Shown here one piece after another: positions 52,389 through 64,000 of a stretch of 64,000 nucleotides of DNA. The position numbers and the translations under genes were made by a program. Location of the stretch: the sequence record MK250027.1; one strand, given 5' to 3'. Each line of letters starts with the position of its first letter. The stretch's first letter is position 1. The notes beneath the pieces were generated by a model. That model was not told the origin of the DNA, did not search any database, and worked only from the letters and a program-made list of their open reading frames with translations.

Positions 52389-52817
52389 TTACCAACATTC
52401 ATAATCTGTAATATCTTCAGAATCACCATTTTTGTTACATACAATACGTATACAGCTACCAATACCAGTTCCTCCTTCAATAAACGAAAATGGAAGCTTA
52501 TATTTACTTTTTACATTCCAATTATCTTTATTGTAATTCGTAACATCTTCAGATTCATTACATGTTTCACATACATATGTATGGCTAAAACCACAATTCC
52601 ACATATCAATTAAATATACAGAACCTCTACCACCATTGCACACTGCTTTATGCTTTACATAAAAATTATGTGCATTCTTTTTCTCTATATCATCCATTTC
52701 AGTAAATCCATGATTATCTTTCAATAATGCAATAGATGTGATACAAGACTGTGTACCAACATCATTCTCATGTTTATTAATAAATGATATAGACATTTCT
52801 AATTCTTTATCTGTCAT
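52389..52817 (-). CDS. Hypothetical Cys-rich protein
   Basis: 142 aa; CETC and an internal duplication (EDVTNY/EDITDY). Confidence 0.75.
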   Translation of the reverse strand: MTDKELEMSISFINKHENDVGTQSCITSIALLKDNHGFTEMDDIEKKNAHNFYVKHKAVCNGGRGSVYLIDMWNCGFSHTYVCETCNESEDVTNYNKDNWNVKSKYKLPFSFIEGGTGIGSCIRIVCNKNGDSEDITDYECW

Positions 52818-52905
52818 CTTATTAAAATTAATTCAATATTTTATATTATATGAAAAAAGGTAAGATTTGTTTCTTAATCTTACCTTTATATTTTATTTAC
52901 TATTA

Positions 52906-53880
52906 TTACCAAAGTGCGGCTGTATAACATAAGTTAGATGTTAATGTAGTATAACCAATAATAGATATAATTCTATTACAAGGTTCAAGAATCATTTTTT
53001 CAAATTGTTTATCATAATCTATTTCAGGTGCATATTCTATTGGATAAGCGCCAGGTAAAAATGCAAAACAATCATAATTTCTATCCTTTGCATAATACCA
53101 CTTAACTTTATCTGCTGTCTTAATAGGATTATACTTTACCTTATATTTCTTATTCTTTGGTTGATTCAAAATAAAGTTAGCAATTCCTGAAGCCTTAACC
53201 TGAATAGGACAATGTTCTCCGAATACCAACTTATTCTTATCATCAAGAACGAACTTTTGATAATTTCCTATTGAACTACCTTTTGAAATCTCTGATGGAT
53301 CTTTAAACATAAACTGTTGTTTATATCCCTTTATTTTCGCAATAATATCTTCATATGGTGGTCTTTCCTTATGTTCCTGATACCAATGCAACATATAACA
53401 TGTAAAGTCTTTTTGACATTCTCTTGCAAATGGTGGTGTAGAACCTTGAACGATCTCAAGTCCCTTATAAACGACTTCTTCCATTTGCTCCAAGAAAATA
53501 TTAGGTTCCTTAAAACACTCTGCCATTGCATAATGTTTCTTTGAAGTCAAGATAGTTGTATCTGCAATTTTCTCTAACTCAAGATTTTGAATATTTACAT
53601 CACAATTATATTTCTTTGCATATTCCTCATATTTCTGTTGCATATATGGTCCACAACCATAATTCCAAAGATCAACAACAAATTGTGCACATTTAGACTC
53701 TGGAATATCAAGCTGTTGACAAATTCTTCCAAATTCTACATATATTGAGTTGTGAGCCAGTATCTCATTTGCGAAGAATGTATGAGTATCATCTACCTCA
53801 ATATCATATACATACTCATCATTAAAATCTTCAAGTTGCTCTATTACATCAATATCCTCTACTTGTATATTGTAATTCAT
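52906..53880 (-). CDS. polB: PolB C-terminal piece fused to a 44-aa C-intein
   Basis: MNYNIQVEDID...VYDIEVDDTHTFFANEILAHN|SIYV..., then LELEKI, SKKHYA, YKGLEIV, CPIQVKAS, DKVKWYY. Confidence 0.92.
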   Translation of the reverse strand: MNYNIQVEDIDVIEQLEDFNDEYVYDIEVDDTHTFFANEILAHNSIYVEFGRICQQLDIPESKCAQFVVDLWNYGCGPYMQQKYEEYAKKYNCDVNIQNLELEKIADTTILTSKKHYAMAECFKEPNIFLEQMEEVVYKGLEIVQGSTPPFARECQKDFTCYMLHWYQEHKERPPYEDIIAKIKGYKQQFMFKDPSEISKGSSIGNYQKFVLDDKNKLVFGEHCPIQVKASGIANFILNQPKNKKYKVKYNPIKTADKVKWYYAKDRNYDCFAFLPGAYPIEYAPEIDYDKQFEKMILEPCNRIISIIGYTTLTSNLCYTAALW

Positions 53881-53956
53881 CTTTTTTCTCCTATTATTAA
53901 TTGTGTATTTTCAACATTATTAAAATGTTCTAATATATAATTATATAAATAATTTT

Positions 53957-54432
53957 TTATATTGTTTTTATATCTTCTCTATCTTTATGTGTTTTATAGA
54001 ATATCCAGTTATCAATAAAATATGGATAAATGAATAACATATTTAATTTATTATTTTTGCATCTTCCCATTTTTGAATATCAGTTTCTGTCCATGTATGA
54101 ATTAATCCATCATAATTATTTTTCGTATTTGTTTTAGAACATTTACTTAAAAAATAATTATACTTATCTTTATCTAATTCTTTATTATATAAACATTTAT
54201 TATGCCAAAATGATCCTTGATACTCTATATATAAATTATACTGTTTTATATAAAAATCACAATTATGATTATATTCTTTTGTTTTATAACATCTTATAAC
54301 ATCATCACCATATAATTCATTTAAAAAAACATATAAAATTTCTTCTTCAATAGATGTATGCTTATTATAAGATTCTGTGACTTTATCTTGTATTTCTGAT
54401 AACTATGAAATATAATCATCATCTATTACCAT
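53957..54432 (-). pseudogene. Vsr/DUF559-like endonuclease domain with a frameshift at the A5 run (54054-54058)
   Basis: CDFYIKQYNLYIEYQGSFWH...WTETDIQKWEDAK; the conserved NNKLNMLFIY continues only in the -1 frame. Confidence 0.6.
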
Positions 54433-54731
54433 ACTAAATTATTATGTTCATTTTCATAATTCTTTTCATTATAACAACACTCATCGAATTTTTTCACTTT
54501 TTCTATATATTCATCTATAATATCAATACCTAAATATTTTGCATATATTATTTTTGCATCTGATATATCACATTTATCATTCATTGTAATACAATTAACA
54601 TTATTATTCAATGCAAAGTATATATCTTTATATGTTGATATTATTTGTTTTAGAAAATATTTTAATAACGTATTATGTTTCTTAAACATATTATTCCTTA
54701 TAATCCTTATTTTTGAACGATAATATATCAT
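54426..54731 (-). CDS. Hypothetical protein, possibly N-terminal fragment of the degenerate endonuclease
   Basis: 101-aa ORF overlapping both neighbours. Confidence 0.45.
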   Translation of the reverse strand: MIYYRSKIRIIRNNMFKKHNTLLKYFLKQIISTYKDIYFALNNNVNCITMNDKCDISDAKIIYAKYLGIDIIDEYIEKVKKFDECCYNEKNYENEHNNLVW

Positions 54732-55846
54732 ATTTCAGTTATATCATTTAATTGATCTTTATTATTAATCATCTATATAAGTGATTTTATAGTTCCTTTC
54801 TTATCATTTTTATATGTAGATTCCCAAACTATTATAACCTTGCAATTCAATGTCTGTTGAATATCTTCAATTCTTTCTCTATCATGATTCCATTTATCTT
54901 TAACTGAACGTCCGTTTCTTAATATAAAATAATTTGTTTCATTAGCATTATATTTCTTTGGATTAAAATGATAAAAATCTCCATAAAATTCTATAACAAT
55001 ATTTAATGATTTATCGTAATAATCTACATGATAAAAATTATTATTTAATAACTTAACTGTATATTCTATATAAGTATCATTATCTTTATAATATTCTTTT
55101 AAATGAGAAAATAACTCTAATGATATATTTGACTTATTACCTATTAAATAATATTGTTCTGAACGTTTTTCTACAAATTCATTATATTTTTGTGTTCCAT
55201 CTTCTTTACCGTATTCTTCGATAAAATAATCTAATGTACATGTATATCTCTGACGTTCGATATAAGCATTCCATATTTTTAAACCATCTATTTCACCATG
55301 TCTTTTAATAAGATTTTCCTTTGTTACCGCTCTAGATTTATTGTATTCATCAAATTTATCTTGAGACATACCATATTTTTCATGTTTATATTCATATGTA
55401 TTTGTAACTGATTGTTTATTACAATATGAATTCCATTTTTCTAATCCTATATCTTTTCCATATCGTTTAATCATTTTTTCTTTGGTAACACATTGTCTTT
55501 CTTTTGCTACAGGGTTGAAATCCTTATCAGGTACTCCAAATCCATACTACGTATATTTTGCAGCTTTATGCGCAAATTTAAATTTTACATCTTTAAAATT
55601 TGGAAATTTCTTGCATACACAATCATAACACCTACATAAATGATATTCATTACCATTATAATTTCTAGTACTTAAAAATGATAACTTATTATTATCACAT
55701 ACTATTTTATGTGTTTTTGAGTTTATATGAAATGTACCATTATCATATATAAGAAATTTACCACATTCTTTACAATAACATATTGATGGATCTATATTAT
55801 TATCTTTACAATATTGAACTACGTTCTATTCACTTAAATATTTCAT
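54728..55846 (-). CDS. Free-standing Vsr-like homing endonuclease, 372 aa (three TAG)
   Basis: ATG overlaps the TAA of the Pol N-intein gene. Cys motifs, KYG repeats, HVDYYDK...IVIEFYGDFYH...IIVWE. Confidence 0.8.
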
Positions 55847-56658
55847 TATCTATCTAATGTTATAATTTTATCAGATTTTTTTATTTCTCTTGCAGGAACA
55901 GATATTAATTCATTATTTCGTATAACCATTATACTATGATCACCTGTAACTATAAGCTCTTTACCGGATTTAGTTTTTAACCTAAACTTATCTTTAGTTA
56001 CTTTATGTCTCATTATATAATTAATCGGTCGTGTAATAGTTTTATAATCATGATCCTTATATGATAATGTATCGTGATTATGTACAGGAATGACTTCAGA
56101 CCCATTTTGTAATTTTATAACAACATCGTCATTTTCATATTTTGCTTTAGTAAAAAAGCCTTCCATTGAAAATACTTTATTATCTATAACTACTTGAGTA
56201 TCAGCAGTTTGCGAATCCGTATCCCCCGCTACAGTTAGTGATTGGTTTCCATCAAGATACGAAAACTCGGGTCCGTCCAACGTACCTGTTTCAGTTGTCT
56301 TACCTTTTGCGATACTTACTCGTTTTGCTTTCTCCGAATCAATACCAAGTTTCTTATGCAATTCTGTATCATTCTGAAATATACCACTGAAATACGCGTT
56401 AACAGAATTCTCAGAATAATGGTTCAAATCCTGACCCTGAAGAGTAATAGACTCTGCAACTGCTGTGTTATGCGCAATGAAATACTTGCTCGCAGTTGCT
56501 CCATAAACACTATTGATAAATTTCTTTAACGCTAGCTGTTTAGTCTCATAAAAATCCCCTAAATTTTTTAATCTTTCTACTTCTTTTTCAAGTTCTTCAA
56601 TACTGCAATTCTCAGGGTCTACTTGGCAAAATTTATAATTCTTATGTTGTTCTTCCAT
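55846..56658 (-). CDS. polB: PolB middle piece (motifs B and C) fused to a 122-aa N-intein
   Basis: KQLALKKFINSVYG (motif B), AGDTD|SQTADTQV...VTGDHSIM (intein block B), TAA stop. Confidence 0.92.
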   Translation of the reverse strand: MEEQHKNYKFCQVDPENCSIEELEKEVERLKNLGDFYETKQLALKKFINSVYGATASKYFIAHNTAVAESITLQGQDLNHYSENSVNAYFSGIFQNDTELHKKLGIDSEKAKRVSIAKGKTTETGTLDGPEFSYLDGNQSLTVAGDTDSQTADTQVVIDNKVFSMEGFFTKAKYENDDVVIKLQNGSEVIPVHNHDTLSYKDHDYKTITRPINYIMRHKVTKDKFRLKTKSGKELIVTGDHSIMVIRNNELISVPAREIKKSDKIITLDR

Positions 56659-56682
56659 TTTATTCTAATTAACGATTTAATT

Positions 56683-56711
56683 ATTATACAAATAAAAATT
56701 CTATTTGTTTA
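56683..56711 (-). promoter_or_regulatory. Class II promoter TAAACA-N17-TATAAT
   Basis: Upstream of the polB middle gene. Confidence 0.6.
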
Positions 56712-56747
56712 TTAAAAACATTATTAACAATATTTAATATAAGATAT

Positions 56748-58406
56748 ATGGAAATTACAGATCAAATTATAATAGATAAGTTAACAGTATTTAGACATAA
56801 TAAAATACAATTAAATACATGTAGAATAAAAGAAACATGGTTAAAAGATCATGGTTTATATGAGTATTTAATTAATAGATTTAAAACCATAGATAATATT
56901 CAAGAAATTATATATAGGATATATTATAAATTACCGGATAATTTACAGTTACATTGTAATACTTGTGGTAATGAAATACCTTTACAATTTAGAGGATTCT
57001 TATATGGATATAATCAATATTGTTCTTATAAATGTTCTTTAAATGATCCAAATAAAATACATAAATTAACAAATGTAAAACAAAAAGATGATATAGATGA
57101 TAATTATGTATTGAATTTAATGATTAAAGACAATAGATTAGTTTCAGAATATTGTAAGAATAAAAAACTTAAGCAATTTGGTATATATGATTATATGATG
57201 AATAGATATGACGATTTACAGAAAAATAAATCTATTATTCAAGAAATTATATATAGAATGAAATATCATATAGATAAATCTCCTCGATGTCCAACATGTG
57301 GGAAATATGTTAACTTTTATAGATTTAGTGAAGGATTCAGACATTATTGTTCAAATGAATGTGCAAATAAGAATGAAAATAATGTTAACATAAAATTAAA
57401 TAATAAGCATAAAACTATAGAAAATAAATGGTTAAACCGTGGATATAAAATTAAATATACAGAAAATAAAAATGAATTTCTTGTATATAATCAATGTAAT
57501 TTACATAATCCATTTAAAATTAAAAAATATACATTCTTTAATAGACAAGGAAAAGATATAATTATGTGTCCTATTTGTAATCCTGAAAAAAATATGGAGA
57601 CTTCTATAGAATATAAAATTAGGTTAATATTAGAGAAACATAATATAAAATTTACGCAACATGTTAGGTATATAATATCACCAAGGGAATTAGACTTTTA
57701 TTTACCTGCTTATAAAGTAGCAATAGAATGTAATGGGATTTATTGGCATTCAGGGATAAACGGTAAAAATAGATTTAAAGTTAAATATGAACTATTATCC
57801 AAAACTGATATATAGATGTTAACTTTTTGGGAAGACGATATTCATTATAACATTGATAAGATAGAAAATATCATATTAAGAAGTTGCAATTTAGAAAAGA
57901 AATTATTTTCAAATGATACTGTTATTAGAGAAATAGATATTGATATATGTAAGTCATTTATTAATAATAACTCAATTAAAAAATATATTATATCTAATAT
58001 AAATTTAGGTTTATTTAAGGATGATAAATTATTATTTGTTATGACATTTTCAAATAATAATGATAATAATTATACATTAAATCAAATATGTTATAAAGAT
58101 AATTTATATGTTATAAATTCTGAAAAATTATTATTATATTATTTTTTTAATAATTATAAATTTAATAAATTGATAACATATTGCGATTTAAAAATTGAAA
58201 ATAATAAATTATATGAAAAATTAGGATTCAAATTAAATAGTGATAAATTAAAATTTAATCTGAATTATTATAATTATAGAACAACTGAACATAGAATTAA
58301 TAAGAAAGAAGTTAATCAATTATTGAAATTAGATGATTCTGATTCATTAGAAGATTATATGAAATGTTATTCAGGATATTTAATATATGAGAAAGAGAAT
58401 GTATAA
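56748..58406 (+). CDS. Vsr/DUF559-like homing endonuclease, 552 aa (one TAG)
   Basis: Joins 56748..57815 and 57816..58406. Two YLINR..QEIIYR-CxxC repeats, ELDFYLP...AIECNGIYWH, LTFWED. Confidence 0.85.
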
Positions 58407-58430
58407 TTTAAATTTATATACATTCTCTTT
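58392..58430. terminator. Bidirectional terminator between convergent endonuclease genes
   Basis: AAAGAGAATGTATA/TATACATTCTCTTT. Confidence 0.75.
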
Positions 58431-59634
58431 TATTATTTTCTAAATATTCATTTATTATAGTTTTTATTATTTCTATCTTATTGCTCCATATAGGAAGATA
58501 ATTCAGATTATTCATTTTCGCAGTTTGACATTTAAAAGGATCAATGATTGACCAAACATTTACAGCAGATTTATATTGTTTTGATATTTCTGCTTTTTGT
58601 TTCCACTTATTTAATAAATCAATATCATCTTTATTATCTTCATCAAATAAATGTTTCCCATGTGTCCAAAATGCGTTTATCTCTATAAATAAATCTAATG
58701 GTTTTATATAGAAATCTACATGGAATGGATAACGCTCATCAACATTTACATTAAACTATATATCATCTTTATCAAATATTGTTTGTAAATATTCATATGT
58801 TTGATATTCTGGTTTTGACATACCAAAATTATCTTTATATTTTTTCTTTATTGTTTTTACATATTGATCAAACTAATATTGATGAAAATTTTCTAATGAA
58901 CCATATTTTTTAATAACAGTTTCTTTTGTCTTTTCTTTATTATTAAATGTTGGATCCCCATATAATTCTAATTTTGTTTCTTTAATTTTGTTTTTTATTT
59001 CTTCATTTTTTGCAGGGTTATCAACGCCATATTTTTTAATAACAGTTTCTCTTGATTTTTCTTTATTATTATCTGACTAAAAACTATATTTACACCCATA
59101 TTTTTTTAAACATGTATTAATTGATTTCTATTTAACTTCTTCATTCTATCCTGAAAATTCTACANNNNNNNNNNNNNNNNNNNNNNNNNNTGTCTTCTAT
59201 AAATATTCCGATGTTTTTGTATATGATGAAACTCCATATTTTTCTAAACATGTTTGTTTTATTTTATCTTTAACTGATTTTAACTACATTTGATGTTCAA
59301 CACCATATCGTTCTTTTAATGTATTTTTTATTTTATTCTATACATTAACTGAATTCATTACACATCGTGAATTTGAACAAAATTTACGAAATCCTCTACT
59401 ATAACAATTAAATCTCACAGGTTTCCCACATGTTTCACATACTGGTCTTATTTCTATTTTATTTACAATACGGTATATTGTCTCCTATATAGATTCGCTA
59501 TCATTATATCTATTAATTAAATAATCATAAATATCTTGATGTTTATTTAACCAAGATAATCTTGTATAATTTTTTGCTAACTAATTCTTTTTTGTTATAA
59601 ATTTTTCTTTTATGTAGTCATCATTAATAATCAT
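58414..59634 (-). CDS. Vsr-like homing endonuclease with KYG repeats (many TAG; spans a 26-N gap; absent from track)
   Basis: YLINRYNDSESI(TAG)ETIYRI, CETC, TCLEKYGV repeats, YPFHVDFYIK...FIEINAFWTH...AKMNNLNYLPIW. Confidence 0.8.
59165..59190. other. Assembly gap
   Basis: 26 N inside the KYG repeat region. Confidence 1.
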
Positions 59635-59675
59635 ATCTAATAATAAATTATTATTATTTTTAATTATATAAAAAA

Positions 59676-59718
59676 TGAGGTAAATAGTTTTTAACAGAAT
59701 TAAAACTATTTACCTCAT
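59676..59718. terminator. Terminator after the RecA C-terminal gene
   Basis: 17-bp inverted repeat ATGAGGTAAATAGTTTT/AAAACTATTTACCTCAT. Confidence 0.75.
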
Positions 59719-59725
59719 TAATATA

Positions 59726-60463
59726 TTAATTAATACTTGCTTCTTTTATAGGATCTTCATCATTATCATTTTCATCTGAAATACCCATTGTTTCCTCTAA
59801 ATCTTTAACATCATCAAATGCAGATTGATCTGGTAATTGGAACATTGGGTGAATAACATGCTCATTTATATAATCAAGATATTCTGGTGTAAATACCTTA
59901 TCAGACCAAAATTCAGTAAAAGGAACTTGTTCATTAAGATGTTTTACTACAATATACCTTGCTGTATCTTTCGGTAAACAATAATGTGTTTCACCATCAT
60001 CTGTTGTCCATGTATATACTTTCTTTTTATCTGAATCTGATAATTTATCATATTCTTTTTGCGTAAGTAAATTTCCTCTACAAACACCTGAATTGTCCCA
60101 TGTCATAAATTGTTCCAAACCAACATATGGGTTAGGTTTTTTAAAATATGGAATTTGAAATTTCACTTTAATTGGTCTGCAAAAACGAGACTTAACTGGT
60201 TTTGCTGTAACTAAAACACCATTCTTTGTACCTGCATCAGAACCTTGTCTTGATTTTGCAGCTGAATCATTCTCTTTATCTTCCAGTTTAGCAGCACTTA
60301 ATTCAATTGTAATTGATGCATTATATACAATACCTGAATTATGATTTATAATACCATTTGCAGAAACATAATTATGTGTGTCTTTAACTGTTAAATCTAT
60401 TACATCCTCACTTAATTCTGACTATATCTTCTTTACAATCTTTAACTTTCTATATTTCATCAT
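59726..60463 (-). CDS. uvsX: RecA/UvsX C-terminal piece fused to a 42-aa C-intein (TAG at codon 14)
   Basis: MMKYRKLKIVKKI(TAG)SELSEDVIDLTVKDTHNYVSANGIINHN|SGIVYNASITIEL...KSRF, in frame with track ORF 59726..60166. Confidence 0.9.
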
Positions 60464-61790
60464 TTATATATTGCGTTATTTTTTTATATTCTAAATATTT
60501 AAAAACTGTTTCTGAAATTCTAACAATACCTAATACATTATTATCTATTAATAAAATATCATTATCTCTTTGCTTATCCAATTCTTCCTAATGAAATACA
60601 CCTTGTCCACCATCATATTCAAATATAATTATTTTACCTTTATATTCTAAATACCCATCACATGCATAAAATATTTTATTTCGTGTTTTATCTGATATTT
60701 CATCTGGAATTATTACTATATATGGTTTATGAATGATTTTCTTATCGATATATTTTTGTAAAAATTCAAAACATCTATTTTCTGATTCTGATATATTTGT
60801 CATCCAGCCACCTTTTATTTTACATAAAAAGTTATCACTATGTTTCCAATTTTTCCAAATATTTTTTGCTAAATTTGATTGTAATTCTTTTTTCTTTAAA
60901 TAATCTTCATATGATTTATAACCTTTATATTCCTCACATGATGGATTAATTTCATGCACTTTTAATTTAGCTTCATCATCAGAATATCCTAACTTCTTCC
61001 AATAATTAAACGTCCATACACTATGTTCTTTTGCATAATATGAAGCTTTCTTTTTTGCATCCTCTATAGTTAGCCCTAAATTTAACCAATATTTTGTTGT
61101 GCTTTTAGAACATGTTGAATTATTCTATTGAACTTTACTTACTTCTATTTTTGCGTCTTCTAATGTATAACCTTTATTTAACCAATATTCAACACAACGC
61201 GGTGATCTATTTTTATTTAATTCTCGTATAATTGATTCTGCTTCAGTATCACTATATCCTCGTGCTAAATAAAACGATTTACTACTTTTAATATATCCTT
61301 TATTCTACTTATCAGGATAATATTGTTTACACCAAATCATTAACTAATCATTAATATCTCGTTCTGTTATAAAATCAGAAAATGTTATGAAATTTATAAA
61401 TCTTTTAATAAAAGAAATATTATTCAAATTAAATGAATATTTATTATCTTTAATGAATGAATTAAATATATCATCTTTATTAAAATATACAACTGTCTTT
61501 TTATACTTATTTAATATAATTTTTTTATATTCATCAAATGAATATCCTCTAACATCCCAATATAAAAATGTTGTATTTTTATGTTTATTTGTAATATTCT
61601 TTAAATAATTTAATAATATATCTATTATTTCTTGAGAGCCATATACTTTATTTTCGCTAAATAACTATTGTAACTTATTAATATACTATGTATTATTTGT
61701 ATTAATATTAAAATTATAAAACTTATTATATTTGTTTATAAACTATATAAACTCATTTATATCAAATACATTTATTTCTACTTTTTTCAT
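60408..61790 (-). CDS. Free-standing Vsr-like homing endonuclease, about 460 aa (many TAG)
   Basis: Read-through ORF with YW-x-x-KGY repeats and CDGYL...IFEYDGG...FH; overlaps the C-intein start and ends in TGA. Confidence 0.8.
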
Positions 61791-61885
61791 ATTAAACATT
61801 TCAAATTTTTGATTATTTTATACCTTATAATATTTATTCATATATAAAGTAAAAATAATCAAAAATTAAAAAATATTTTATGGTA

Positions 61886-62860
61886 TTATTCAGAAATTGC
61901 ATAAATTTCATCATTTTCATTTAATTCTGAAACTATTTTCCATGAGCTATCCAACTCTGGTTTATCAGGATTAATAAGAAATCTATGTGTATTTGAACAT
62001 GTAATAGTCTCTCCATTATCAAATGTAAATGTATATGTCGGTTTTTTAAAATGCCAAAGTTTCTCTACATCATGATATTCACCATCATGTGACAATACTT
62101 TATCTCCAACAACAACATCTTTCATTTGTTTAATTCCATTATTTGTAATAATTTTTTCATCTGGTCGTAAACAACCCATTGCTTGTATATTCTGAGGAAT
62201 AAATGACATAGATTGATATACATGGTTCACTACAATCCAAGGAATTTGCAATTTTGCAATTGGAGTAGCACAAACTCTAAACATTGCTTTAGTATCTTTT
62301 GCTTTTGTAAAATCTGCTTTTTGTGAACCTGACAATGTATCTTCACGTTCCTTTTCAGATGTTAAATTTCCGAGAGAATCCAATACAATAATAACTTTAT
62401 CATGTTGACCATACTTATCTTGTTGTTCTTGCAATTTATCACATAAATTTGCAATAAATTGGCTTGTCTCCATAATTGTATTAACTTTTTTAATAATTAA
62501 TTTAGATGGATCTACTCCAAGACGCCTAACAAAATCAGAATCTATTGCACCTTCAGAATCAAGATAAATTGGAATATAACCTAATTTTTGAGCTTCCCTA
62601 CAACATGAACATGCTAAAAAAGATTTACCAGCGCCAGATGTACCCGAGAACGTTACAACTCTACCAGTCGGTATTGCTTTATAAATATCACCTGAACAAC
62701 ATGCATTTAAAATATAATTACCTGTTGAAATCCATTCTTTTATATTTGAATACGCTGAATCTGCAATAATTTCAGCTTGATCATCTATACTACTTACCAT
62801 TGACATTAATGAACCAATACCACCTTCAAAATCTTCGCTTGACTACTTTTTCTTTGCCAT
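61886..62860 (-). CDS. uvsX: RecA/UvsX N-terminal piece fused to a 95-aa N-intein (TAG at codon 6)
   Basis: ISTGNYILN, GTSGAGKS (Walker A), YLDSE, IVLDS (Walker B), VNHVY, QAMG|CLRPDEKI...TCSNTHRF, TAA stop. Confidence 0.92.
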
Positions 62861-62892
62861 AATATTAAATTACGTTAATTTTTATTTTATAT

Positions 62893-62921
62893 ATTATATA
62901 TGTTTTTTATTAATTTGTTTA
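62893..62921 (-). promoter_or_regulatory. Class II promoter TAAACA-N17-TATAAT
   Basis: Upstream of uvsX(N). Confidence 0.6.
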
Positions 62922-62987
62922 GAAAATAATAGCATCTAAAATTAATTTCTAATCTTAGATGCTATCTTATATTTAAGCTATAATAAA

Positions 62988-64000
62988 TTACATAATACCT
63001 CCAAGAACATCATCAAGACTCATTCCTGCTGCTGGATTTGTAGGAGCTGATGGAGCTGGTGCACCTGCATTCAAAATAGAATCAAGTTCTCCTGTACCTA
63101 CACCAGGAATATTAGCAGCATTAAAACCACCAGGAGTTGTCTGATTCATTGATGTAGCATCACTACCCATTTCAAGACCTGTTGCTGGTGCAGATGGAAT
63201 AGGATTTGCCGGAATTCCTGGACTTACCTGCGGTTGCATAGCTGGTTGCATATAAGGATTTGCTGTAGACATTGCTGCTGGTTGCATACCGGTTGCAGCT
63301 TGCATTGAAGCCTGAGGATTTGTATAAATCTTAATACATGAATTAACAAAATTAGTTGTTTCCTGTGTCCATGCATGATACTCATAAGGTTCAAGTGAAG
63401 GACAATTCTCCTTAAGATATGTAAGAATTGTAGGTTTAATATCTGGATTTGATTCAATTACTTGCTGAGTAATTGGTTGCCATGTCTCCTGACCTTGTGC
63501 ATTCTTAACCTGAATACGAAGAGCGCCATCTGCTGGTTGAAGATCAATAAACTGTGAATCATCAAAGTTATTGAAATTAGACACCAACTTACACTTTACA
63601 TAAAATGGACGTCCAACAAACATATTAAATGGATTTCTTGGAGTTCCCATAGGTGGATTCATCTCATTGTAAATCTTCTCATGAATCTTGATACCATAAC
63701 GCCATACAAGAATCTTACCTACCAACTGAGGTTCTGACTTACATGAAAGAATCTGTACAAGTGAAGCATAACGCTGACGACGTGAAAAATGCTTTGAATT
63801 TTCTTTAAGAACAGGATTCTCACTATTACGAAGTGCAAAGAATGTATCCTGTAGAATATCTGGTTGACCAATTGTAGATGGACAATCAACTTCCATCTGT
63901 GCATTTGTCAAAGGATTCTTAAGGAATACTGTATTCTTAGAAACGATAGATTTATTTGAAGGATCCTCTGGATTTGGAATAAAGCGAATTACTGCATCAT
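62988..64000 (-). CDS. Single-stranded DNA-binding protein, T4 gp32-like (5' end outside window)
   Basis: AVIRFIPNP...VDCPSTIG...RRQRYASLVQI...GKILVWRYGIKI...NFNNFDDSQF; acidic/hydrophobic tail LDDVLGGIM. Confidence 0.85.
   Translation of the reverse strand, partial: DAVIRFIPNPEDPSNKSIVSKNTVFLKNPLTNAQMEVDCPSTIGQPDILQDTFFALRNSENPVLKENSKHFSRRQRYASLVQILSCKSEPQLVGKILVWRYGIKIHEKIYNEMNPPMGTPRNPFNMFVGRPFYVKCKLVSNFNNFDDSQFIDLQPADGALRIQVKNAQGQETWQPITQQVIESNPDIKPTILTYLKENCPSLEPYEYHAWTQETTNFVNSCIKIYTNPQASMQAATGMQPAAMSTANPYMQPAMQPQVSPGIPANPIPSAPATGLEMGSDATSMNQTTPGGFNAANIPGVGTGELDSILNAGAPAPSAPTNPAAGMSLDDVLGGIM

Follow-up and report, generated by a model that had tools for sequence, protein, structure and literature searches.

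The uvsX gene of Lak-B megaphages as a probable fractured gene, with the halves of a split mini-intein on either side of a Vsr-like endonuclease gene and TAG read as glutamine

We analysed a 64,000-nucleotide (nt) stretch of sequence record MK250027.1 (hereafter the window, to which positions refer unless another record or locus is named), in which a gene for a UvsX-like recombinase lies in two pieces on the minus strand at 59726-62860. In all probability this uvsX is a fractured gene, in which a class-1 mini-intein at the edge of the recombinase loop L2 is split by a gene for a Vsr-like endonuclease, and the two protein halves would be joined by trans-splicing. The segment 59700-62900 is 100% identical to the Prevotella phages Lak-B7 and Lak-B8, and its identity to the seven remaining Lak-B genomes is 99.2-99.9%; the G+C content of the window is 25%. 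Genome-level comparisons drew on the GenBank records of Lak-B7, B1, A1, A2 and C1. An earlier reading of the letters alone (the sequence-only reading) had proposed a split intein in RecA/UvsX hidden by codon reassignment, and on re-reading the open reading frames (ORFs) of the window we found all of its strings and coordinates for the uvsX halves to be correct.

The N-half ORF (61886-62860, minus strand, 324 amino acids) consists of a 229-residue UvsX N-extein (62174-62860), which starts with MAKKK, carries the Walker A motif GTSGAGKS, ends with QNIQAMG and matches phrog_97 (E = 1e-45), followed by a 95-residue N-intein (61889-62173) that runs from CLRPDEKI to YAISE and is closed by a TAA stop (61886-61888). 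The C-half ORF (59726-60463, minus strand, 245 amino acids) has its own ATG at 60463 and opens with a 42-residue C-intein (60338-60463; MMKYRKLKIVKKI-TAG-SEL...NGIINHN), which leads into a 203-residue UvsX C-extein (59729-60337) beginning with Ser+1 (SGIVYNAS) and ending at a TAA stop (59726-59728). In-frame TAG codons are found at codon 6 of the N-half (62843-62845; also TAG in Lak-A1 and Lak-C1) and at codon 14 of the C-intein (60422-60424). The next in-frame ATG of the N-half is codon 19, at 62806. Between the halves lies an endonuclease-like ORF of 463 amino acids (60408-61799, minus strand) with eight in-frame TAGs and a TGA stop, in a frame that differs from that of the uvsX halves; its 3' end overlaps the 5' end of the C-half by 56 nt (60408-60463). 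The two uvsX ORFs share a reading frame and are separated by 1422 nt, or 474 codons (1425 nt from the end of the N-intein to the start of the C-intein), and dozens of TAA and TGA codons close the frame that joins the intein halves. Under genetic code 11 only a 146-amino-acid, GTG-started remnant of the C-half is listed, from which the C-intein is missing, exactly as the sequence-only reading had claimed.

Lak megaphages are published users of TAG as a glutamine codon, with a tRNA(CUA) and release factor 2 (PMC8346664), and the window conforms to this. Taking TAG as sense raised its long-ORF coverage from 42 to 58 kb, and the 58 complete ORFs terminate in TAA (52) or TGA (6) and never in TAG, while containing 104 in-frame TAGs and 403 CAA/CAG codons. 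Three columns of the uvsX alignment of Lak clades pair TAG in one clade with CAA/CAG in another. The Lak-B7 genome encodes a tRNA with anticodon CTA (MK250026:414053-414124), the acceptor stem of which (U1-A72, G2-C71, G3-C70, A73) is as in the phage tRNA-Gln(TTG) and tRNA-Gln(CTG). Since no ORF ends in TAG, TAG pairs with CAA/CAG and a Gln-like tRNA(CUA) is encoded, we conclude that TAG specifies glutamine in this phage (genetic code 15). TAG accounts for 20% of the glutamine codons across the window and for only 2 of 22 in the uvsX halves. The Lak-B7 genome also carries, outside the window, a tRNA with anticodon TTA that would read TAA (MK250026.1, 345556-345627; locus L021, 1501-1573), despite which most ORFs here (52 of 58) end in TAA. 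It has been reported as universal in Lak genomes, for which TAA recoding is without evidence (PMC8346664).

Both intein halves scored above the curated NCBIfam cut-offs (24.5 bits for TIGR01445 intein_Nterm and 15.6 bits for TIGR01443 intein_Cterm). Residues 230-296 of the N-half matched the former with 29.0 bits, the match starting exactly at Cys230, and residues 23-43 of the C-half matched the latter with 26.3 bits, the match ending at HN|S. All class-1 intein residues are present, namely Cys1 (Cys230 of the N-half), block B S-N-T-H, the terminal H-N and Ser+1. Among solved structures, the N-intein is closest to gp41-1, a split intein of cyanophage-like type (6QAZ, E = 4e-6). The C-intein aligns with the very C-terminal ends of the inteins of Pho RadA, DnaB and DnaE, its best solved match being the C-terminus of the Pho RadA intein. 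Compared with two more distant Lak relatives (loci L038 and L039), the N-intein is 50-52% identical to both of their N-inteins and the C-intein 68% identical to that of L039. The C-half starts with Met at the position where the C-inteins of L038, L039, a third relative (L041), a Vibrio phage and phage HY03 also begin, and the codon-14 position occupied by TAG is variable in homologues (E, S or G). The insertion is in frame and its removal restores the host protein; its halves sit on separate ORFs of the same strand, each fused to an extein, with the frame between them closed. Co-folding of the cognate L039 halves, which are homologues and not the Lak-B pair, gave an ipSAE of 0.73 compared with 0.02 for the best of three controls; among solved complexes 51 of 78 attain this mark, and among mismatched pairs 2 of 108. 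The runs shared at least 91% of contacts, partner pLDDT (predicted local distance difference test) was at least 77, and the predicted interface includes C-intein residues 1-14. This model supports a likeness of the pair to known split inteins, as distinct from binding of the Lak-B copy.

The uninterrupted alleles of other Lak phages show what the spliced product would be. In Lak-A1, Lak-A2 and Lak-C1 the region is matched by two segments just 1.34 kb apart, and uvsX is uninterrupted in Lak-A1/A2 and Lak-C1 (431/430 amino acids). Across the site Lak-A1 reads ...QNIQAMG-SGIVYNAS..., which is the predicted splice product with no gap (allele sequence over the junction: QNIQAMGSGIVYNAS / SMSFIPQNIQAMGSGIVYNASITIE). 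The in-silico spliced Lak-B UvsX is identical to Lak-A1 at 409 of 431 positions (95%), with an ungapped junction, and 67% identical to Lak-C1; the N-extein is 98% identical to Lak-A1 residues 1-229 and the C-extein 92% identical to residues 230-431. In the DNA, the 30 nt on each side of the insertion site differ from Lak-A1 at three positions, all synonymous. The ratio of nonsynonymous to synonymous substitution rates (dN/dS) between Lak-B and Lak-A1 is 0.035 for the N-extein and 0.074 for the C-extein, at a dS of 0.57-0.75, and both exteins are thus under strong purifying selection. In none of the nine Lak-B genomes is either half shortened or broken by a TAA or TGA stop. These results bear out the claim of a split intein in a UvsX-like member of the RecA family.

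The C-extein on its own found no relative among solved structures, and contiguity was therefore shown with a profile of the uninterrupted Lak-A1 and Lak-C1 proteins. This profile runs through the junction into E. coli RecA (...MFGNPETTTGG|NALKFYAS...) and into the phage UvsX 9GBG (...KEMGGG|SGLKYAAS...). Because these alignments are unbroken, the insertion site is placed by homology at the C-terminal edge of RecA loop L2, in agreement with the location that had been proposed; the break in the alignment to RecA that would have spoken against a split UvsX did not appear. The profile matches 9GBG with E = 1e-35 over residues 27-283, and the N-extein alone matched 9GBG, 7Z3M and T4 UvsX 3IO5 in the PDB. 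The bacterial RecA equivalog TIGR02012 gave only 44.6 bits, far below its cut-off of 325.3. Together with the Walker A motif, and with both exteins contiguous in solved UvsX and RecA, the recombinase is a UvsX-like phage type and not a bacterial RecA.

The presence of an endonuclease gene between the halves, another point of the sequence-only reading, was upheld at the level of fold. The 463-amino-acid ORF had no match in PHROGs, in NCBIfam (including TIGR00632 vsr), in a phmmer search of the PDB or with a 13-sequence profile. Full-length metagenomic homologues are 34-95% identical to it, and those of L038 and L039 (34-43% identical, full length) also sit between uvsX halves. The AlphaFold2 (AF2) model of its C-terminal 150 residues (60411-60860, minus strand; pLDDT 81) forms a predicted Vsr-like, EDxHD-type nuclease domain. 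Exhaustive structural alignment matched this model to Vsr 1CW0 (Z 9.1, 117 residues aligned) and to the catalytic domain of I-Bth0305I, 3R3P (Z 8.4, root-mean-square deviation 3.0, 95 of 98 residues), with Z 8-9 being a range in which structural matches can reflect a common arrangement. Further matches were 3HRL (Z 7.4) and RAP domains, and the best-ranked matches form a single coherent fold family. Foldseek against the PDB returned nothing at E ≤ 0.001 and weak PD-(D/E)xK matches. Seven residues (D68, E81, D83, H90, D95, R98 and D99) are invariant across nine homologues, and in most of these the E-to-H spacing is as described for the EDxHD family (PMC3239194, PMC2677866); the invariant residues are consistent with the EDxHD motif. 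On the basis of its fold we thus describe the ORF as a free-standing Vsr-like (EDxHD-type) homing endonuclease, with putative activity and target.

We propose that, with TAG decoded as glutamine, the locus would yield three proteins of 324, 463 and 245 amino acids. The N- and C-intein fragments would associate and then trans-splice by means of Cys1, S-x-x-H, the terminal His-Asn and Ser+1, giving a 432-amino-acid UvsX whose junction is identical to that of the uninterrupted Lak-A allele. The endonuclease would drive homing of the whole 1.84-kb cassette into alleles lacking either the intein or the endonuclease. For the Lak-B halves, trans-splicing is suggested by homology, by the conserved catalytic residues and by the structure prediction on a homologous pair.

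Some points weigh against this scheme. The complex prediction was made with the L039 inteins (52% and 68% identical to those of Lak-B), where it may reflect model memory of solved inteins. The intein and endonuclease are near-invariant among the nine Lak-B genomes, within which selection on them is not measurable. The endonuclease assignment draws on fold (Z 8-9) and motif residues, with no significant profile match to Vsr or EDxHD proteins. Finally, a contig from an RNA library, derived from a relative about 93% identical, spans the 3' half of the endonuclease gene, the C-intein and the start of the C-extein colinearly with the DNA, and may represent DNA carry-over.

The sequence-only reading held that recombinase activity needs TAG to be read through in both halves. 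TAG is indeed read as a residue, by ordinary sense decoding as glutamine and not by read-through, and the requirement stands for the C-half but may not hold for the N-half. No in-frame start downstream of the codon-14 TAG retains the C-intein, and residues 1-14 belong to the interface predicted for L039; a product terminated at this TAG would be of no use, and the C-half therefore cannot do without TAG decoding. In the N-half, the codon-6 TAG lies in the authentic N-terminus, since homologues conserve MAKK. A start at Met19 could give a protein 18 residues shorter, such that decoding of this TAG may not be strictly needed. By default we read the two uvsX TAGs as ordinary glutamine codons; that at codon 6 is conserved in Lak-A, Lak-B and Lak-C. 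It is unlikely, in our estimation, that they act as a gate, with the C-intein unmade until tRNA(CUA) is expressed and active recombinase requiring both the code switch and trans-splicing. The corollary, that two post-transcriptional layers would time recombination-dependent replication as well as homing, is equally doubtful. It is possible that the very frequent use of TAG in the endonuclease genes, for about every second glutamine codon, limits nuclease expression to the phase after the switch.

That uvsX is physically interrupted in Lak-B and that Lak-A and Lak-C keep an intact copy would also suit a dead gene, disrupted by the cassette and left with decaying halves while recombination relies on host RecA or another phage protein. 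We regard this as very improbable, given halves that are full-length and free of TAA and TGA in nine genomes, intein catalytic residues that are all intact, and an arrangement that is still found, at 34-68% identity, both in distant relatives and among cultured phages of the T4-like kind; the dN/dS of the exteins led us to reject a pseudogene. The halves might instead assemble non-covalently through their intein fragments, with no peptide bond formed, as do NrdA and gp43 where they are split without inteins, in some T4-like phages. Fragment association is predicted for the L039 homologues, and assembly of intein-less fractured genes by protein interaction is documented (PMC3045599, and for an SbcD-like case PMC2677866). 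However, mere docking has no need of Cys1, SxxH, HN and Ser+1, which are conserved in 60-61 of 61 N-inteins and in 18 of 19 C-intein ends of the family, and a 137-residue HINT domain left at the edge of L2 would probably obstruct the filament groove, to judge from RecA 3CMU and PMC3239194. Such assembly without splicing is improbable.

Removal of the interruption at the RNA level by a group I intron, or production of a contiguous intein by stop-codon read-through, would be in keeping with the shared frame of the halves, with the TTA-anticodon tRNA encoded by Lak genomes (PMC8346664) and with the abundance of group I introns in gut jumbo phages (PMC12880540). Yet the endonuclease gene is in another frame, and because of the many TAA and TGA codons of the joining frame we rejected a contiguous intein made by read-through. 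We likewise rejected a group I or II intron, since comparison of 52500-64000 with Rfam gave no intron match, even with the limit on E relaxed to 1. The C-half begins with a Met of its own, at the start shared with the C-inteins of L038, L039, L041, Vibrio phage and HY03, and the RNA-library contig is colinear with the DNA across the boundary between endonuclease and C-intein. These routes are scarcely credible. With a closed frame, no intron match, selection on the exteins and intact catalytic residues, a pseudogene, RNA splicing and a read-through polyprotein are all poorly supported, and trans-splicing of a fractured uvsX is the reading that we retain.

Lak-B and the more distant L038, L039 and L041 carry the uvsX cassette, and Lak-A and Lak-C lack it; such patchiness within Lak fits a mobile element. 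In L038 and L039, the N-halves end in an N-intein (GG|CLTPDEN... and GG|CLHRDEM...), the C-halves begin with a C-intein (...NGIINHN|SG...), and the endonuclease overlap is about 50 nt. At the Lak-B site, L041 has a related locus that is split by a 101-nt gap with no endonuclease gene. A pig-gut contig about 92% identical to Lak-B shows the same fractured arrangement, and in another contig from the same sequencing run the exteins are joined directly, as in an intein-less allele. A same-site split intein together with a free-standing gene for an endonuclease is also found in cultured T4-like phages: Vibrio phage vB_VmeM-32 (KU160494; ...SGG|CVVEG... / ...VVSHN|TGAVYSAN..., with a short middle gene for which the record notes SegG similarity), Escherichia phage HY03 (NC_031047; ...MTGG|CVIAG... 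/ ...IVTHN|TGVMYSAD..., with a middle gene annotated 'homing endonuclease') and Salmonella phage SEA1 (OQ927978; gene order annotated uvsX_2, hypothetical, uvsX_1). Annotations of these split genes are limited to 'uvsX_1/uvsX_2', 'HintC' or 'hypothetical', and searches of the literature for UvsX with intein, Lak with intein, and HY03 found no description of the element in searchable literature. A tblastn match to Xanthomonas phage XaC1 was discarded as a same-site intein, its protein being uninterrupted.

The family profile of phrog_18112 ('recombinase') starts with the C-intein, and at least 17 of the 40 best-listed phage records align from within the C-intein. We ran an exhaustive HMMER search with the Lak-B N-half and classed the best 150 of the 50%-identity clusters. 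Among these, 35 proteins stop right after the N-intein and are therefore split, 89 representatives are intein-less, and 18 contain both intein halves, 13 of them as contiguous mini-inteins (e.g., P0018, 561 amino acids, GG|C...HN|SG). Cys is first in all 61 N-inteins and (T/S)xxH is present in 60; HN and the nucleophile residue are kept in 18 of the 19 C-intein ends scored, the remaining one being SN|S.

The UvsX family has at least three intein sites: site a inside Walker A (...SG|T-GKS), site b at ...HVYA|(S/T/C)xG..., and site c at GG|SG, which is the Lak-B site. Several representatives, of the kind of P0023, P0096, P0030 and P0061, combine a site-a C-intein and a site-c N-intein in one ORF. 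In the Lak-like L041 (1755-5099; Logan contig SRR19415656), uvsX is in three pieces with two split inteins 14 codons apart. The order is ...NHVYA|N-intein(b), a DUF7487 endonuclease gene, a 147-amino-acid ORF, the 101-nt endonuclease-free gap, and C-intein(c) with the C-extein. The 147-amino-acid ORF consists of C-intein(b), the 14-residue extein CVGAYVPTNIQSGG, which is the L2 loop itself, and N-intein(c), so that insertion of this single loop would take two trans-splicing reactions. Over 59700-62900, 20 of the 24 differences between Lak-B7 and Lak-B1 are confined to a 67-nt tract (62632-62698, uvsX codons 55-77). The last codon of the tract, 77, is precisely that of the +1 residue of site a, which is Ala in B7 and Ser in B1, and the tract has the look of a patch of gene conversion beside a known insertion site. 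A lower-depth, 704-nt contig of run X1 (record 2) has diverged N-intein and C-intein pieces separated by 174 letters, matching at 60333-60391 and 61970-62000; it may stem from a different gene or strain of that sample, one with a contiguous mini-intein.

Lak-B uvsX belongs to a known class of fractured genes; the UvsX host is new in the literature, and the phage uses code 15. The fractured genes of Dassa et al. 2009 (PMC2677866; gp41-1, NrdJ-1, IMPDH-1 and others) have the same one-strand order of N-half, short spacer, endonuclease and C-half, their host is likewise a phage enzyme of DNA metabolism, and the Lak-B intein is mini-sized (95 + 42 residues). They include gp41-1, to which the closest solved relative of the Lak-B N-intein belongs; a Vsr-like endonuclease is present in 12 of their loci, as in Lak-B; and a hairpin upstream of the endonuclease ORF was noted there and is likewise found in Lak-B. 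Their gp41-7 has no endonuclease, like the L041 locus. In contrast, UvsX is not one of their eight host enzyme types and appears there just as a neighbouring gene, their spacers are 27-51 nt compared with 86 nt in Lak-B, and Lak-B differs from their loci in the 56-nt overlap of endonuclease and C-half and in the TAG sense codons of all three ORFs.

The fractured uvsX of HY03, SEA1 and vB_VmeM-32 is interrupted at the homologous site (TGG|C…HN|TG compared with AMG|C…HN|SG in Lak-B) and uses the standard code, unlike Lak-B; the inteins of vB_VmeM-32 are just 33-41% identical to those of Lak-B. The same-site element was thus already present, undescribed, in RefSeq T4-like phages, and since these cultured phages are viable, a split UvsX at this site works. 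With I-Bth0305I (Taylor et al. 2011, PMC3239194; 3R3P), the Lak ORF shares the predicted nuclease fold and repeated short helix-type modules at the N-terminus, and it has invariant E, D, H and D residues that are consistent with the motif of that family. I-Bth0305I targets the L2-coding region of a phage recA, as the Lak-B insertion lies at the L2 edge, but it resides in a group I intron a few codons upstream (at F-G-D-P of L2) and not in an intein, and the two proteins have no significant sequence-profile similarity. Contiguous inteins of the RecA family (mycobacterial RecA; Pyrococcus RadA, 2LQM/4E2T) also place a HINT domain in a recombinase of RecA fold but are single polypeptides at other sites. 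The Pho RadA intein is in the P-loop, which corresponds to site a of the UvsX relatives, and mycobacterial RecA inteins are found at sites other than that of Lak-B. The cyanobacterial DnaE split intein is likewise naturally split and assembles an essential DNA enzyme by trans-splicing, whereas its halves are far apart with no endonuclease between them (PMC2677866), those of Lak-B being 1.4 kb apart around an endonuclease gene.

For Lak megaphages, these findings correct how a core recombination gene is annotated: in the Lak-B clade, pipelines using code 11 or unaware of inteins would label uvsX truncated or duplicated; the Lak paper itself makes no mention of inteins (PMC8346664). UvsX, at the edge of its L2 loop, joins the hosts of fractured-gene split inteins. 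A single site is found in five states (empty, contiguous mini-intein, split with no endonuclease, split with a Vsr-like endonuclease and split with a Seg-like endonuclease) and offers a compact natural series for the Dassa model of split-intein origin. Split inteins of the gp41-1 class are valued as ligation tools, and the sizeable, mostly unexplored UvsX family may hold orthogonal pairs. Lak-B uvsX is also a concrete case of an alternative genetic code and protein splicing acting on one gene.

Around the cassette, a long AU-rich hairpin of 85 nt (61794-61878, minus strand) lies in the spacer of 86 nt that separates the stop of the N-half from the endonuclease gene, with the endonuclease AUG (61799-61797) within the base of its stem. 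It has a predicted stability of -26.8 kcal/mol (z = -5.9), matched by none of 200 shuffles. Since it is not conserved in L038 or L039, we make no regulatory claim for it. A scan for sigma-70 promoters did no better than shuffles. The overlap at 60408-60463 contains one TAG in each frame, and its retention in L038 and L039 suggests translational coupling or co-evolution of the two genes.

Directly upstream of uvsX is a gene for a gp32-like single-stranded DNA-binding protein (62988-63998, minus strand; phrog_224, E = 7e-21), which extends past the window. Between the two genes, an 18-bp terminator-like hairpin with a T-rich tail (62928-62966, minus strand) is the sole such site in 59500-63100. 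Lak-A1 has a 403-amino-acid homing-endonuclease-like ORF between uvsX and the gp32-like gene (L001, 4329-5540), where Lak-C1 and the window (62861-62987) have a short spacer only; each clade therefore has a different mobile insertion around uvsX.

The family-B DNA polymerase gene of the window (52906-56658, minus strand) is also fractured by a split intein, the first of the two seen in the window. Its N-part with an N-intein lies at 55846-56658 (TIGR01445, 32.9 bits) and its C-intein with the C-part at 52906-53880 (TIGR01443, 29.2 bits), with ORFs at 54728-55846 (phrog_22677, three TAGs) and 54043-54432 (weak Vsr and homing-endonuclease matches) between them. The N-part, 270 amino acids long, matches only a middle section of the polymerase profile, so that the enzyme may be divided into more than two parts. 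Five endonuclease-like ORFs are interleaved with the polymerase pieces and uvsX halves within 8 kb (54043-61799), including one on the plus strand at 56748-58406 (phrog_3339/559, E about 1e-43) and one on the minus strand at 58414-59634 (phrog_3339), which includes a masked run of N at 59165-59190. In these five ORFs TAG mostly makes up a high share of the glutamine codons: 0.47-0.50 in 58414-59634 and 60408-61799 and 0.20-0.23 in the two ORFs between the polymerase parts, but 0.06 in 56748-58406. The pieces of polymerase and uvsX have shares of 0-0.12, and for many other ORFs the share is 0.

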